A stretch of 64,000 nucleotides of DNA from Tetramitus jugosus. Taxonomy: Eukaryota > Protista > Heterolobosea. A program made the position numbers and the translations under genes. The notes below the pieces were generated by a model. The model ran no database searches and was not told where the DNA came from. It saw nothing but the letters and a program-made list of their open reading frames with translations. Below, piece after piece: positions 8,119-15,923 of the stretch (position 1 is its first letter; each line of letters begins with the position of its first letter). The stretch is from positions 124,001-188,000 of the forward strand of contig OW569375.1 in assembly GCA_937625935.1 (NCBI GenBank). Reading direction: 5' to 3'.

Positions 8119-9723
8119 TTATTGAAAGGACTCTTGTATGATGTTGAATCGATGTGTTTTCGACCAGGTTTCATAGTCAGAGGTTGTTTTGAATCGATTG
8201 AATGTATCTGCCATGCACAATTCAGCATGGAGCTGGGCATCGTCAAATGTGTCATCCAAACCATTTTGGTAGGATGCTGCTAGAGCAGATGCAACGTAAC
8301 TAGGTAAATTGAGAGAAAGAGGTGAAGATTCGCGAATAAAGAGCCTAAAGAGTCCAGTTCCAAACTGAATTCGATCTTCGCGCTCAGCCAACATTCGATA
8401 ATGTTCTACTTCCTCCCAAAAGATAACGTTCTCTCCACTCAACTCGTGTTGAGCAAACGTTTTGAATGTCTGCCGAATTGTTTCACCTTGAAGCATAATC
8501 ATAAGTGAACCTCTTCTCGAATACTTTCTCTTGGCTGGAATGGTCTTGAGCGCCATCTGCTTTGGATTGTATGTGTATTCATTAGTCGTCGTATTTGGAG
8601 TTGTTTTTGGTACTGCCTGAGCTGTCTTACTTGTTTCTGCTTTTGGTTTAGTTGGTGTATCATTTTGTCTTTCATATTCCTCATAAGAATCTGACCCAGA
8701 GTCGGGTGTTGAGTCTGGTAGCAGTCTCGAGAAAAATTGTGGCAAAAGTTGTTTTCTTTCTGAGGCACTGATATGTATTGTATGTCTCTTGGAAGGATCA
8801 GATAGCTTGCGAGCTGCGGGTTGTCCGGTCTCAGTCTGTGTTGTCGGTTCGTTAATGTTGCTAGTCTGTGAGTTCATACCCCCCGATTTGTTGGTCAACG
8901 ATGGCAGAGGTAGGATCGGATTAGAGGGTCTTCTTGTGGCACTAACATCAATCTTCAATGCATCAGCTCTCGTCCTTACGACACCAACACCAGTATCATG
9001 TCCTGGATTGAATCGTAATGAACTATCAGTCGGTAATAGCGAGTATCGTGGATTCTTCTTTCTTCTACCATGGAAATCTCTCTGTAAGTCTGACAACTCA
9101 TTAAAATACTCTTCAAACTCAGCACTTTCTCTCTGTCGTTGCATCGTTTGTTGATCCATTCTCTGGTGTTCTTGAACATCCATTTGAATGATATTAACAG
9201 AATTATCGGCACGCATCTGTGGCGTATTGTTTTGACCTGAACTCGGCTCAGGAAACCTTCGACTCTTGACCTGTGCTCTATGATCTTGGGCTCGTGAGGA
9301 ACGTGTGAATGCCGAAGCAGACGAGGAAGAAAGGCTCTGAGCTGCAGATTGTGCTCCCTTGCCCTGCTTTGCAATCATACTCCAATTGTTTCTCACGAGA
9401 GCCATCTTCCAATTGGAATTGAATCGAAACACAACAGAATCCGAATTGACAAACGGGGACTGATGAGTCACATGCAGAATATACTTTTTGCGCAGTAACA
9501 GGTTGCCAAACATTACACTGTGAGATTCAGATGTGATCCCCAACAAGTCTCCCAAGTGAGGCACTGCCAAACTACCATAAAAACAATCAACACCATAGTT
9601 TGCATGAACAAACAAATCATTCTTCAACTTTTGTTTCAGATCATGCATACAAGTGACAAATTCCTCCTCTTGAAAACAATGAGCGGAAGAGTCATTGAAC
9701 TGTCTCTCTATTCTTTCTTCCAT
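8119..9723 (-). CDS. RGS (regulator of G-protein signalling) domain protein
   Basis: C-terminal FKTFAQHELSGENVIFWEEVEHY..FIRESSPLSLNL..FDDAQ..DTFNRF matches the RGS pattern. Confidence 0.88.
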   Translation of the reverse strand: MEERIERQFNDSSAHCFQEEEFVTCMHDLKQKLKNDLFVHANYGVDCFYGSLAVPHLGDLLGITSESHSVMFGNLLLRKKYILHVTHQSPFVNSDSVVFRFNSNWKMALVRNNWSMIAKQGKGAQSAAQSLSSSSASAFTRSSRAQDHRAQVKSRRFPEPSSGQNNTPQMRADNSVNIIQMDVQEHQRMDQQTMQRQRESAEFEEYFNELSDLQRDFHGRRKKNPRYSLLPTDSSLRFNPGHDTGVGVVRTRADALKIDVSATRRPSNPILPLPSLTNKSGGMNSQTSNINEPTTQTETGQPAARKLSDPSKRHTIHISASERKQLLPQFFSRLLPDSTPDSGSDSYEEYERQNDTPTKPKAETSKTAQAVPKTTPNTTTNEYTYNPKQMALKTIPAKRKYSRRGSLMIMLQGETIRQTFKTFAQHELSGENVIFWEEVEHYRMLAEREDRIQFGTGLFRLFIRESSPLSLNLPSYVASALAASYQNGLDDTFDDAQLHAELCMADTFNRFKTTSDYETWSKTHRFNIIQESFQ

Positions 9724-11028: not shown

Positions 11029-11437
11029 AGTACTGTCTTCTATTGTTTTTTGGAAGAGGATTGTTGCGGTGTCAATATTATCTTCATGTTCTTGATAATA
11101 TTCCAAGAATGGTTTGGCGGATGAGACAAAAAACCATTCGAGGCCACCGAAACAGATTACACAGTCGAGTGGTCCAGTCATTCATGATAAAAATCAGCCA
11201 CACCTTATTCATAGATTTTCCAATGCATGGAAAAAACATCATGATTCTCAACCAGGAGAGTATTACCAACAGGATAAATCTAATTCTGCCACTTGATCTT
11301 CAAGAATTCCCAGATTTTTGTTTTCTCAAGTTCAACCAGTTCCAAGTAGAACCGCCTTCGAACTGGAAGTCGCTGAAATCAAATTTATGACACAAACATG
11401 TTCAAAGCGAGAGAAACACTCAACAAACAACAGAATC

Positions 11438-12601
11438 ATGCAAGAAGATCACACCAGCTCTAATGTCACCGTTTCTTGTTCCTATGTGTTCAACATTGTG
11501 AACAACAAGAGGAAACGATTTTACAACAATCATGTGCTTGTCGATCTACAATCAGAAGCACACTTTCAACAGTGTCATATCGCCACTGCACTCTCCCTGC
11601 CTGCTTCCTTTGTTGCTCTTGCAAAGAATGATAACAGCGGTAATTTAGATCAGAAATTTCTGAGCAAGCTCGATGCTGTGATTCAACAATTGTCCGAGAG
11701 ACAATTGGCACGAAAACCAGATGCCCCGCCCACTACTCTCATCTTTTACTCCTCCAATGTTGTACAGCAGTGCTCAGAATCCAGTACGGATTCATCAAAT
11801 TCAATATGTCACGAGTTGACTTCGTCCTTTAATTCTGAAATCTCTCAAGTCATTGTTGATTTGTATCAGATGATTCAGAAGAGAATGGATGAGAATTCTG
11901 TCCTTCCGAACAAGCTGGATATGAAACGAATCAAGATTGCGATTATGGAAGCTGGAATCGAAGGTTTCGTTAAAAAGTATGGAGGTCTCATGTGCAATGT
12001 ACCATTACCATCGGATGAATCAACGGTCAATGATGGAGAGCCGAGTTTCTTCACAGTCAAGAATCCCTCACCTCTCATGCCACATGTGTTTAATCCAAAT
12101 TGTTATGAAATAACACGCAACACTGCATATCCCAGCGAAATTATCGATGATTTTTTGTTCCTTGGCACAAGATCTCATGCCAATGATGAGTATATTCTGA
12201 ACAAATTGAATGTACGTCATGTGTTGAATGCTACCAACGTTCCAAGTGATCTATTTGGTAGAAGAAGGGTTAAGGATCGTATTATGCATTTGCAAATTTC
12301 ACTGATTGATCTTCCCCATGTGGATATCAAGAGCAAATTTACTGAGGCTATCGAATTCATCACCAAGGTCAAGAATGAACGACAACCTGGCGAAAAACTG
12401 TTGGTTCATTGCGAACAAGGTATTTCCAGATCTGCCTCCCTTGTCATAGCCTATCTCATGGTCACAGACAAACTCACATGCGAACAAGCAACCAACTACG
12501 TCAAAATGAGAAGGAAGCTCGTTCAGCCCAATCCTGGTTTCCGCAAACAATTGGCCGCTTTCGATGTCGAACTTGAACTCAATTCTTCGAATAACATTTG
12601 A
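11438..12601 (+). CDS. Dual-specificity (MAPK-type) phosphatase with N-terminal rhodanese-like domain
   Basis: VHCEQGISRS catalytic loop, YPSEIIDDFLFLG, AYLM, PNPGFRKQL; N-terminal LVDLQS..F..CHIATA and AGIEGF motifs. Confidence 0.92.
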   Translation: MQEDHTSSNVTVSCSYVFNIVNNKRKRFYNNHVLVDLQSEAHFQQCHIATALSLPASFVALAKNDNSGNLDQKFLSKLDAVIQQLSERQLARKPDAPPTTLIFYSSNVVQQCSESSTDSSNSICHELTSSFNSEISQVIVDLYQMIQKRMDENSVLPNKLDMKRIKIAIMEAGIEGFVKKYGGLMCNVPLPSDESTVNDGEPSFFTVKNPSPLMPHVFNPNCYEITRNTAYPSEIIDDFLFLGTRSHANDEYILNKLNVRHVLNATNVPSDLFGRRRVKDRIMHLQISLIDLPHVDIKSKFTEAIEFITKVKNERQPGEKLLVHCEQGISRSASLVIAYLMVTDKLTCEQATNYVKMRRKLVQPNPGFRKQLAAFDVELELNSSNNI

Positions 12602-12696
12602 TTTCCCCGAATATTCTCGCCCTTACAAAAATTCTTGTTCCTGAAGAACCAAAATCCATGAGAATCAAAAGCTTTTGGCTCAAAGCAACAAAAAAA

Positions 12697-14556
12697 ATGT
12701 CATCACCATCTTCGTCAACATCGACAGCAGCATCCTCCTTACCTCCCCATGTCCTACTCGTAGCTCTGGGTGACGGTCAATCGAAGGTCTGCCAAGAAAC
12801 AAACCGCATCTTCAAATTTCTCAAGTGTCAATTTGCTGGTCTTCCCGTCAATCAATCCAACTCACCATTGAATCACTTGGTGCCAACAGATCGAGAAAAT
12901 CAATTGATTTTGGCCCACACACTTCACGATCTCCTATTCAAGTTCTGGGCTCGTCTATTGAGGTACTTGAAATGGAAGGAGAGTGAACTGGAATCAAAGC
13001 ACATTTCATTTGAGAGTGACTTGTTGCATTTGATGAACGTGTTGAGAATGTCGAGACGCAAGAGTGCAGCACACTCTGAAAACGCTGATAGTGGAATCAT
13101 TGGAGATGATATGAGCTTTTTGAGTGATGAGGACGGAGAAGACAATGGAGAAGAAGAGGACGATGAAGAGGAGGAAGAAGAGCAACAACAACAACAGAAA
13201 AACAACAACAAAACTGCCAATAATGGGCAGCAACAATCAGAGAACAACAAGCAACAAAAAACTTGGACAAAGAGACTGAAATTGAAGCCAACCACTGCGT
13301 TCACAACAGAAAAATCCACAAACGACATTAGTGCCGTCGTGACGAGTGATTTTTGTGACTTGTTGTTGCGCGTTTGGGATCAAGATCCATTGATTCGAAG
13401 GTTGTTCAATTCAGAGGAATCTGATGAGTATGCTCAATCATTGCTCGACAATAGTATTTTCTCAGAATTCACCTATGTGACATGTGAGAGCATGATTTAT
13501 TATCTGATGGGTGATTTCTTGCCTCGATTGAAGAGTCATCTGAGTGAAGGCAACAAATTGAAGGACTTTGTGTGCGATCAAAACGACTATATCTTCTGTA
13601 GTTATAAGCCAGATTATCGTGATTTGATCTTGAACTTGAACGGACAGGAAGTGTTGATCACTACTGTCAATCTAGAAAGCAAAGACACCATTGCAATTGC
13701 TACTTTATTGGAACAGTGTGATCTGTTGTTGTTCAACTTGGATTTGGCAATCTATTGCCGAAACGATCTGCGTGATATTGTTGAAATGTTCTGTGCAAAG
13801 TCTCGCTTCGAGAACATGTCGACTCATGACGCAATTGCTACACGCGCAAGAGTGCCTCCTATTGCTTTTATTCGATCTGGTATCGATAATATGCACATGA
13901 ACTTAGCTAGATATGGATTGGGAATGTTGCCTAGTGAGATGTTTGATGACTCTTTGACTTTCTTGGCTCCAGAGAAAGTTAAAGCCCCTAAGAAATATAC
14001 TTCACCTGATGTACCATTGAAACAGTGGACGTACGGCAACAATGCGCCTCACGATGAAAATGAAGAAGGAGAGTACCTCGAGCAGTTATCTCAGGATGAA
14101 TGGTCACAAATCATTCGATTCATTGGCAACCCAGATGACATGTTATCATTGTCTCAAGTCTGCACGACATTCCGTCAGCTCATTGACGAGAATGAAAACT
14201 TTTGGAAGGGTGTAATGATTGGAAGAAGTACCACCTTTGCTAAAGAGAAGAAGAGAGAAGCACTCCAAAATTATGTTCTAACTAGCACTGATTCCTCTGA
14301 AAATGCGCTTTCTCCTTCCTGGAAACGTTTCTATTTGTTCGCCAGACAGCAGGTGCACAACCTATTACCAGGTGAAATTTGTAACTTTATCGTAGCAAAC
14401 AAGACACTCAGATATGTGACAAATCAAAGAGAAGAACGACTGCCGCTTATTGAGAATTTACCTTTCTTTGATGTCGACTCGATGCATTTGTCACAATTGA
14501 AGGAAACTTTGCCAAGAGCGATTGAACTTGCCGTTCTCCACAAGACCGCACAATAA
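12697..14556 (+). CDS. Degenerate G-alpha-fold protein containing an F-box
   Basis: F-box LEQLSQDEWSQIIRFI..DMLSLSQVCTTFRQL..FW. Flanking segments align collinearly by eye with G-alpha, but the G1-G5 motifs are lost. Confidence 0.7.
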   Translation: MSSPSSSTSTAASSLPPHVLLVALGDGQSKVCQETNRIFKFLKCQFAGLPVNQSNSPLNHLVPTDRENQLILAHTLHDLLFKFWARLLRYLKWKESELESKHISFESDLLHLMNVLRMSRRKSAAHSENADSGIIGDDMSFLSDEDGEDNGEEEDDEEEEEEQQQQQKNNNKTANNGQQQSENNKQQKTWTKRLKLKPTTAFTTEKSTNDISAVVTSDFCDLLLRVWDQDPLIRRLFNSEESDEYAQSLLDNSIFSEFTYVTCESMIYYLMGDFLPRLKSHLSEGNKLKDFVCDQNDYIFCSYKPDYRDLILNLNGQEVLITTVNLESKDTIAIATLLEQCDLLLFNLDLAIYCRNDLRDIVEMFCAKSRFENMSTHDAIATRARVPPIAFIRSGIDNMHMNLARYGLGMLPSEMFDDSLTFLAPEKVKAPKKYTSPDVPLKQWTYGNNAPHDENEEGEYLEQLSQDEWSQIIRFIGNPDDMLSLSQVCTTFRQLIDENENFWKGVMIGRSTTFAKEKKREALQNYVLTSTDSSENALSPSWKRFYLFARQQVHNLLPGEICNFIVANKTLRYVTNQREERLPLIENLPFFDVDSMHLSQLKETLPRAIELAVLHKTAQ

Positions 14557-14650
14557 ATTATTAGACTCATTCTCCAACACCTGACAAGCAACTGATATCT
14601 AATGAATGATTGATCAACTATTGACAAGCATTTTATTTGTTAGAGTTCTA

Positions 14651-15923
14651 CTACTTTTTGAGCTTCTCTCGCAAATTCTTGACTTCTTTCACCAAGAGTT
14701 TCTTGTGACTCTTGAGCTCCTTAATGTCCTTTTCGGTCTGTTCTCTTTGTTTATCGATCGTCAAAAGATAGTTGTTCATTTTGACGAAGACTGTTAATAA
14801 ATTATCTAAATCCGCATTTAATTTTTCAAGGCTCGAAACACGTTTGCTCTTCGATTTTAGAGTATTTTGTCTCTTTCTGGATTTTGGTTGTGGTGCAGGT
14901 TCTTCATCTGACTCCTCCGATTCTTCTTCATCCTCTTCCTCACTCGATTCTTCATCATTGCTGTCAGATCTCTGATCTTCGTTATCATCAACGTCATCAG
15001 TGTCCTCTTCATCCGAATCGTTGTTGCTCGACTTTTTGCCCTTCTTGTTATTGCTCCGCGACGAAACATCCTGCTTGTTCGAAGCTTCAGCAACAACAAC
15101 CGAAACACCACCACCATAAATATTTGTGGCATTGGAAGTTCTCATCGTTGATTCCATGTCGTCCTCTGCGTCTATATAGCTCGGTGCGTTCGGAATTCGC
15201 GACTCAAAACTGTTCGCATGTAATATACAATCTGAAATTTTCTTGTCCAATGTCACAATCTCTCTATCAATGCTCTTGAGTTCAGCAGGATCAATCATTG
15301 CCATTCCATTGGGCCTAGGCGGTGAAGAAGACAAATAAAAATCAGCGTTCGATGCTCGAGTAGACACACTGATCCTTGAATCAGCAGCCATCTTCATTCG
15401 AATATTCAACTGAGAGATCACACGTTCAATATTCTTGATCCAAATCTCCTTGTCAGAGCTCGATTCCGTACAGAGAACAAATCGACGTGTGGTAGAGCGA
15501 ACAACAAACGAATGAGGTCGATTTCGTTCACATTGTTCGGCAGTTAAACGATCCAAGAATGCACCATGCAAATATCTGTTTGTTTGGTTTTGTTGTTGAG
15601 CTTGAAGTTTAACAAGAATAAAATAACAATAAGATCAAAAAAAAAAACATCGTACATGATACCCAATGGATGATGCAAATCATCAGATTCCTTAAAATAA
15701 ATGAGAAAACCGTCGGGAATCAAAATAAAGTAACGTTTTCTCCACGTCTTGTAATTTGCTCCTCGTTTTGTCATGAATCCTTGATGTGCAATGACACCGT
15801 TGGGAGGTGAACCAAAATTTCTATCATCATCATGAGTTAGTAGTGTTGGAAAATAGTTGATATATTGTTATTGTTGTTGTTTCATTGATTGTTTCATTGT
15901 TTGACATACTTTTTCGTGGACAT
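14651..15923 (-). CDS. PH-domain protein with acidic tract and C-terminal coiled coil (2 introns)
   Basis: ATG 15923; GTATGT..CTAAC..TAG intron 1 and GTACGA..CAG intron 2 both restore the frame: HQGFMTKRGANYKTWRKRYFIL..YFK..PLGII..HSF..RRFVL..WI. Confidence 0.85.

Follow-up and report, generated by a model that had tools for sequence, protein, structure and literature searches.

The gene at positions 12697-14556 (+) of the window, i.e. of the whole 64,000-nucleotide stretch of Tetramitus jugosus DNA that was analysed, encodes a protein of 619 residues that is probably a G-alpha-derived pseudo-GTPase with a nested F-box, serving as a nucleotide-independent substrate receptor of an SCF ligase. 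In the mechanism we propose, the gene would be a highly diverged descendant of the alpha subunit of a heterotrimeric G-protein. It would belong to a lineage-specific family of Naegleria-like amoebae in which an F-box was presumably inserted into the loop between alpha-G and alpha-4 of the Ras-like domain. All five nucleotide motifs and the switch sequences have disappeared, as have the lipidation site and the N-terminal helix that binds G-beta; GTP switching and heterotrimer formation would have been abandoned, and the G-alpha-shaped body was most likely kept as a nucleotide-independent substrate-binding domain. According to modelling, the F-box and the helices after it may dock on Skp1, and the protein would then recruit substrates to a ubiquitin ligase of the SCF (Skp1-Cul1) type.

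In this soil amoeba, the open reading frame spans positions 12598-14556 (+) of the window and its first ATG is found at 12697. The resulting coding sequence (12697..14556) is intronless and complete, comprising 619 codons plus stop. Contigs from RNA libraries tile positions 12685-14572 and fade out in the spacers on either side. Their comparison with the gene revealed zero joints, and the sole indels are in-frame and 3 nt long; one of them is a GCA indel polymorphism after position 13226. Such contigs are present in at least nine libraries, namely eight soil metatranscriptomes from separate studies and one oligo-dT run, and a single contig of 1873 nt from the oligo-dT library covers positions 12728-14572. 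The gene model is therefore sound, and the gene is intronless and transcribed. The strain variants seen in the RNA contigs comprise 22 synonymous and 13 non-synonymous changes, which corresponds to a pN/pS of about 0.15, as only 20% of the possible single changes are synonymous. Five of the 13 amino-acid replacements are located in a low-complexity insert. The gene is thus under purifying selection.

A word-index search with the 619-residue protein yielded P0001, a copy with 98% identity, and the orthologues P0002 and P0003 (46-48% identity). Beyond these, a profile search of all 1.84 billion representative proteins retrieved only a pair of fragments and the distantly related P0006 (E 3e-11). 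The sample that contained the orthologue P0003 is also the source of P0006, which is therefore a paralogue in a related organism; an upstream exon was not seen for it. For one of the orthologues the gene is placed behind a dual-specificity phosphatase gene, as in the window. The phosphatases of the two organisms are merely 34% identical, compared to 47-48% for the pseudo-G-alpha/F-box protein, which is therefore the better conserved of the two. An RGS gene at 8170-8496 (-), 4 kb upstream, had been named in the sequence-only reading as a partner for co-folding. The 26-Mb genome contains at least 130 RGS domains, so that an adjacency of this kind is expected by chance in about 1 of 20 cases, and the RGS gene was not found at the orthologous locus. 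Because RGS domains are too common, the adjacency carries no meaning. Likewise, a conserved signalling cluster consisting of the RGS gene, the phosphatase, the gene studied here and a PH protein was considered and rejected: only the adjacency of the phosphatase is kept at the orthologous locus.

All elements of the protein are encoded on the forward strand. Strand beta1, a degenerate P-loop 'GDGQSK' (no GK[ST]) and helix alpha1 (aa 19-47, 12751..12837) were assigned by means of the secondary structure of the model and an alignment with G-alpha P-loops. Conservation of this part across the family is strong, columns G25-Q28 and C32-R37 being invariant, and the remodelled P-loop region (aa 20-41) is near-invariant. 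It is followed by an all-helical domain (aa 64-300, 12886..13596), the hallmark insert of G-alpha, which was deduced from the matches of a model based on the family only and from an 'LW..P' match found with hhalign. Within this domain lies an acidic/poly-Gln low-complexity insert (aa ~118-205, 13048..13311). It is lineage-specific, being absent from P0002 and P0003, and its pLDDT is below 50. The Ras-like core with beta2-beta3-alpha2-beta4-alpha3-beta5-alphaG (aa 309-406, 13621..13914) was identified from the model, fold matches and the comparison of motifs. The linker that connects alpha-G to the F-box (aa 407-459, 13915..14073) is predicted to be disordered (pLDDT <50) and nonetheless carries a near-invariant motif block at aa 407-444; invariant columns of the linker are G407-F416, F422-A424, E426-V428, A430-K432, Y434, S436 and P437. 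The F-box itself (aa 460-508, 14074..14220) is nested in the G domain and is indicated by PF12937, PF00646, the model and a co-fold with Skp1. It consists of three helices, which occupy residues 466-476, 479-486 and 490-498 in the model. The post-F-box helices (aa 509-558, 14221..14370; modelled at 513-531 and 542-556) were delimited by alignments and the model, and contain a 'WKxFY' motif that is common to the G-alpha/F-box paralogues described below. Finally, the G domain is resumed with alpha4, beta6 and alpha5 (aa 559-619, 14371..14553), as deduced from an hhalign comparison with the canonical G-alpha profile and from the model.

The loss of nucleotide and catalytic motifs that had been claimed from the sequence was borne out by the alignment, in which all five motifs G1 to G5 are gone. 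The canonical GxxxxGK[ST] of G1 is replaced by 'GDGQSK', whose Lys is an Arg in the orthologues. Switch I reads 'ILNLNG' and lacks the canonical Thr. The DVGGQ of G3 corresponds to 'TTVNLE', the NKxD of G4 to 'RSGID', and the TCAT-type motif (T/S-C/A-A-T/I-D) of G5 to 'FDVDSM'. Furthermore, beta1 is preceded by 18 Ser/Thr/Pro-rich residues only, with a Ser at position 2, no Gly2 and no nearby Cys. An N-terminus of this kind offers neither an alpha-N helix nor a lipid anchor. With the nucleotide motifs, the alpha-N helix and the lipidation site lost, the protein can therefore act neither as a GTP switch nor as a conventional subunit of a heterotrimer.

At the level of sequence, no match of the 619-residue protein to the Pfam G-alpha family PF00503 was obtained even at E <= 1, and a six-frame scan of the 26-Mb genome with PF00503 detected more than 20 G-alpha genes, none of them from the window. 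A sequence search of solved structures gave chance matches only (TssA, E 0.1). In a comparison with canonical G-alphas by means of hhalign, the sole local match was the 'LW..P' motif of the helical domain (probability 1.6%). The stretch concerned, 'LLRVWDQDP', had already been paired with G-alpha by eye and is the only local match to G-alphas in both hhalign and BLASTP. By means of MAFFT, the by-eye pairings of beta1/P-loop, helical 'LW..P', 'TTVNLE' opposite 'DVGGQ', beta4 and beta5 were reproduced. For a statistical assessment with hhalign, the F-box was split off, and 60 column shuffles and the reversed query served as controls. The segment after the F-box (aa 540-619) aligned to the canonical, F-box-free G-alpha profile over alpha4-beta6-alpha5 with a score of 27.1 (P 0.0015), as had likewise been suggested by eye. 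None of the 60 shuffles reached this score (12.3 +/- 2.3, maximum 18.5), and the reversed query scored 10.3, which results in a z of about 6. The core before the F-box aligned in the expected beta4/beta5 register, yet 7 of the 60 shuffles reached its score. The similarity of the sequence before the F-box is not above chance; the case rests on the fold, the C-terminal block and the intermediates.

For the analysis of the fold, an AlphaFold2 model was generated from an alignment that contained only the family's own four sequences. Because the alignment held no G-alpha, this family-only model is an independent test. Its overall quality is poor (pLDDT 38), and it is confident in helices 70-120 and 210-290 alone. 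Among 48,161 representative solved chains, exactly four matched at Z >= 5, and all four are G-alphas. The match to G-alpha-s has a Z of 8.0 with an rmsd of 2.8 A over 111 residues of the helical domain; that to G-alpha-i1 has a Z of 7.6 with an rmsd of 2.6 A over 107 residues at 18% identity. In the latter case, residues 66-302 of the model were aligned to residues 64-180 of the chain, which constitute the all-helical domain that defines G-alpha. With the G-alphas of rice and Entamoeba, 195-201 residues were aligned, spanning residues 16-398 of the model. Note that Z values of 6-8, as reached by the family-only model, are middling. A Foldseek search with this model gave no significant match; most of the top 50 hits were still G-alphas.

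A second model was computed from an alignment of 25 rows, in which the family was combined with seven paralogues and with canonical G-alphas cut in two where the F-box is inserted. Its pLDDT is 66 and its pTM is 0.62. The elements follow the complete G-alpha order, with beta1, alpha1, helical domain, beta2-3, alpha2, beta4, alpha3, beta5 and alpha-G; then come the disordered linker, the F-box helices (aa 466-498), further helices, alpha4, beta6 and alpha5. Compared to G-alphas, Z values of 19.2, 18.3, 18.3 and 16.0 were determined over 271-316 residues, and Ras-like and small GTPases reached 13 at most. The Foldseek top 50 are G-alphas throughout, and the look-alikes in the Atlas are G-alpha clusters. 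Since G-alphas were part of its alignment, the second model is not independent and is merely consistent with the hypothesis. It displays what the sequence-only reading had anticipated from structure prediction, namely the combination of a Ras-like and a helical domain, from which the F-box bulges out between alpha-G and alpha-4. Taken from the models, the predicted fold is that of a Ras-like domain which, as in G-alpha, accommodates an all-helical domain between alpha1 and beta2.

The architecture is not peculiar to this gene, as the same genome harbours seven clearer paralogues, i.e. G-alpha genes with a nested F-box. They are located on contig 1 (156661-158445), contig 13 (433754-435430 and 291108-293321), contig 3 (407172-408842), contig 50 (65758-66903), contig 28 (307886-308980) and contig 6 (178342-179082). 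In these seven paralogues, the G-alpha match ends at about position 280 of the 333 positions of the profile, directly after alpha-G, and is followed by the F-box and then by alpha4-beta6-alpha5. Two of the seven have an F-box that exceeds the Pfam cut-off (37.5 and 32.5 bits), and a G-alpha HMM built without the F-box recognises both flanks of the insert in two of these seven genes. With G-alpha HMMs, six of them obtain 68-239 bits, and several G motifs are retained in most; the paralogue on contig 6 is degenerate and was missed altogether by the G-alpha HMM. The seven form a decay series, and at least one G motif is altered in each of them.

The relationship between these paralogues and the family of the gene at 12697-14556 was assessed by profile comparisons. 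With hhalign, one collinear alignment of 253 columns was obtained (probability 27%, P 7e-4), which passes through beta4, alpha3, beta5, the F-box, 'WKxF' and beta6-alpha5. A direct HMM comparison of the 619-residue protein with the paralogue profile gave 6.3 bits, and a scan of the genome with this profile did not find the open reading frame at E <= 1. These direct matches in sequence are weak, yet collinear throughout. P0006 scored 29 bits against the same profile in three collinear pieces, the part after the F-box having an i-E of 5e-6, and when the genome was searched with P0006, the second match shared its reading frame with a strong PF00503 match. Word-index searches with P0006 and with the F-box plus C-terminal part of one paralogue retrieved only the query itself or a 96% copy. 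As judged from sequence, P0006 appears to bridge the seven paralogues and the family of the gene at 12697-14556. This gene is probably an eighth member of the G-alpha/F-box family, one that was missed by the G-alpha HMM, and it is plausible to assume that the gene and the paralogues descend from one insertion event.

The position that the sequence-only reading had assigned to the F-box agrees well with the Pfam matches, which together cover aa 462-504 (nucleotides 14080-14208). F-box-like PF12937 matches aa 471-504 with an E-value of 7e-5 and 23.0 bits (cut-off 24.3), and F-box PF00646 matches aa 462-503 with an E-value of 0.002 and 18.4 bits (cut-off 20.5). The Pfam scores of the orthologues' F-boxes are lower than those of the 619-residue protein. 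The F-box block is among the best-conserved parts of the family, whose orthologues are about 47% identical. It carries 'LS' in place of the canonical 'LP'. In order to predict docking, the excised fragment aa 455-560 was co-folded with the Skp1 of the same genome in three runs and with three controls. The score was 0.85 in each of the three runs compared to 0.01 for the best control; of 78 solved complexes, 51 attain the pass mark of this procedure, as do 2 of 108 mismatched pairs. With a partner pLDDT of 64-65, the three runs had at least 90% of the contacts in common. The predicted interface is canonical, with aa 461-493 contacting the C-terminal helices of Skp1 (aa 106-165), which is in line with the premise that the F-box may dock on Skp1. 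As many solved structures are complexes of Skp1 with an F-box, a pass shows likeness and may reflect solved complexes known to the prediction method. The co-fold thus supports, rather than shows, that the F-box binds Skp1; that it does so in reality, and that the protein functions in a ligase, is what we infer.

Several other explanations have to be weighed. The protein might not be derived from G-alpha at all and might instead combine an F-box with a helical and alpha/beta region of other origin, in which the motifs have arisen by chance and the AlphaFold result was steered by the alignment. This would agree with a core before the F-box that is not above shuffles and with the blank searches against the Pfam G-alpha family, PDB sequences and the language-model Atlas. 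We consider it very improbable: the only matches of the family-only model at Z >= 5 are four G-alphas and include the helical domain, the C-terminal block is significant compared to canonical G-alpha, P0006 connects both families, and bona fide G-alpha/F-box genes have the same insertion site and 'WKxF' motif. Hardly to be expected, too, is a protein that is still a switch regulated by a nucleotide or another ligand via a non-canonical pocket. All motifs from G1 to G5 are lost, and the Lys of the P-loop is unconserved, being an Arg in orthologues, even if the near-invariance of aa 20-41 suggests that something is still bound there.

The two remaining alternatives accept a G-alpha-derived pseudo-GTPase and differ in its role. 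The Pfam score of the F-box below the gathering threshold (23.0 compared to 24.3 bits) and its 'LS' instead of 'LP' would fit a relic F-box in a scaffolding or inhibitory protein that is not part of an SCF ligase; moreover, the internal position could impede the assembly with Cul1 and Skp1, and the co-fold relates to an excised fragment only. A relic is nevertheless unlikely, given that the block is among the best conserved in the orthologues, that the co-fold yielded 0.85 compared to 0.01 with a canonical interface, and that an F-box is kept at the same site in seven paralogues, two of them above the Pfam cut-off. The other alternative concerns the substrate. RGS proteins and G-beta-gamma dock on the switch regions and the N-terminal helix of G-alpha, and an SCF receptor could mimic G-alpha in order to ubiquitinate RGS proteins, G-beta-gamma or 7TM receptors. 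The overall G-alpha shape including alpha5 is retained in the model, G-alpha genes and RGS domains (at least 130) are extremely abundant in the genome, and an RGS gene lies 4 kb upstream. Such a mimic is quite unlikely: other sequences stand in place of switch I and II, neither the N-terminal helix nor the lipid anchor is present, and the RGS adjacency, expected in about 1 of 20 cases by chance, is not conserved at the orthologous locus. The initial proposal of a G-alpha decoy acting as an SCF receptor can accordingly be kept in part. Its pseudo-GTPase with a nested F-box and predicted docking on Skp1 stands; a decoy for RGS proteins, G-beta-gamma and receptors is not supported, because the surfaces used by RGS proteins and G-beta-gamma are gone.

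The reading that we prefer remains a nucleotide-independent SCF receptor derived from G-alpha. With more reserve, one may speculate that a whole clade of Naegleria-like G-alphas has turned into substrate receptors of cullin-RING ligases, ranging from possibly nucleotide-sensing members to a nucleotide-blind, constitutive SCF receptor that would recognise a specific signalling protein with its body and the linker motif. If this were true, recognition of the G-protein type would be coupled directly to ubiquitination, a wiring that to our knowledge is not known from any other eukaryote. G-alpha subunits are among the best-studied switches in biology, and, if the inference holds, the family would represent a new route for recycling a signalling GTPase fold into a degradation adaptor, parallel to FBXO4 and starting from a different GTPase. 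The family is also a natural series from near-intact to fully dead members, which can reveal those G-alpha surfaces that survive once switching is abandoned. Its most diverged members escape family HMMs and are revealed only by fold prediction and intermediates. In the literature that was searched, we found no paper on a fusion of G-alpha and F-box, an earlier description remaining possible, and no G-alpha-derived pseudo-GTPase that serves as the recognition module of a ubiquitin ligase.

Compared to canonical G-alpha (PF00503; G-alpha-i1, PDB 2gtp; Entamoeba EhG-alpha-1, PDB 4fid), the 619-residue protein has the same predicted order of elements including the C-terminal alpha5. In contrast to G-alpha, it lacks the nucleotide motifs, the switch sequences, the alpha-N helix and the lipidation site, and its alpha-G and alpha-4 are separated by about 150 additional residues, which make up the linker, the F-box and helices. 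With the seven paralogues it shares the F-box in the alpha-G/alpha-4 loop, the adjoining 'WKxF' and the resumed alpha4-beta6-alpha5. It differs from them in that it has no G-alpha HMM score and has lost all five motifs; furthermore, it does not have their long extensions at the N-terminus and carries an acidic/poly-Gln insert of its own. FBXO4 (Fbx4) is an animal F-box protein whose substrate-binding domain adopts an atypical small-GTPase fold; this domain serves as a substrate-recognition module of an SCF ligase without nucleotide cycling. A kinship with FBXO4 was considered and rejected, as the sole link is a language-model Atlas score of 0.80 between the whole protein and F-box clusters of the FBXO4 type, the closest lead of that search, and such a score is matched by shuffled proteins a third of the time; an Atlas search with aa 1-372 of P0003, the part before the F-box, gave no usable match. 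By analogy, the two proteins may have in common the concept of joining an F-box to a domain with a GTPase fold but no nucleotide cycling. However, the F-box of FBXO4 is N-terminal and its GTPase-like domain is of Ras/Arf size and has no helical domain, whereas the F-box of the 619-residue protein is nested.

In the pseudo-G-alpha protein, alpha-G is joined to the F-box by a linker that is predicted to be disordered, with pLDDT values below 50. The linker contains a near-invariant block (residues 407-444, window positions 13915-14028), composed of the elements GLGMLPSEMF, FLA, EKV, APK and Y.SP, in orthologues that share just 47% identity. The block may serve as a site of docking or of phosphorylation. 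The acidic, poly-Gln/Asn low-complexity insert within the helical domain (residues 118-205, window positions 13048-13311) is missing from the orthologues P0002 and P0003. In-frame indels of 3 nt vary among strains at window positions 12725 and 13226.

Approximately 100 bp upstream of the pseudo-G-alpha gene lies a gene coding for a rhodanese and dual-specificity (MAP-kinase-phosphatase-like) phosphatase (window positions 11318-12601, plus strand), whose counterpart occupies positions 6950-7900 of L001, the orthologous locus of another organism. In both organisms the two genes are arranged head-to-tail at this distance, and this adjacency is the sole neighbour relation conserved between the two loci. 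The downstream gene on the minus strand (window positions 14651-15774) codes for a PH domain and is apparently split. Two ORFs share the domain, 15544-15774 holding its N-terminal half and 14651-15571 its C-terminal half, which suggests a short intron near position 15560.

The G-protein signalling repertoire of the 26-Mb genome is very large: RGS domains were matched at least 130 times, and G-alpha genes number at least 20. A further unusual G-alpha architecture is found on contig 35 (positions 409508-412147, L015:8-2647, plus strand), where a protein of at least 880 residues carries both Kelch and TPR repeats and, at its C-terminus, matches G-alpha weakly, with 52.5 bits. In addition to the canonical Skp1 of 168 residues (contig 12), there is a second, truncated Skp1-like match of 58 bits within an open frame of 877 residues (contig 34, positions 118146-118244, L025).

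The G-alpha/F-box paralogue on contig 6 (positions 178342-179082, L017:1834-3468, minus strand; a frame of 608 residues) is likewise strongly decayed. The G-alpha HMM gave no match, and the gene was detected solely by the F-box plus C-terminal profile. In P0006, a paralogue from a related organism (L023:3195-4364), beta1, the P-loop and the first helices are missing, and an upstream exon was not observed. P0006 retains more G-alpha-like strings, including the C-terminal ...RNNI, which recalls G-alpha-i.
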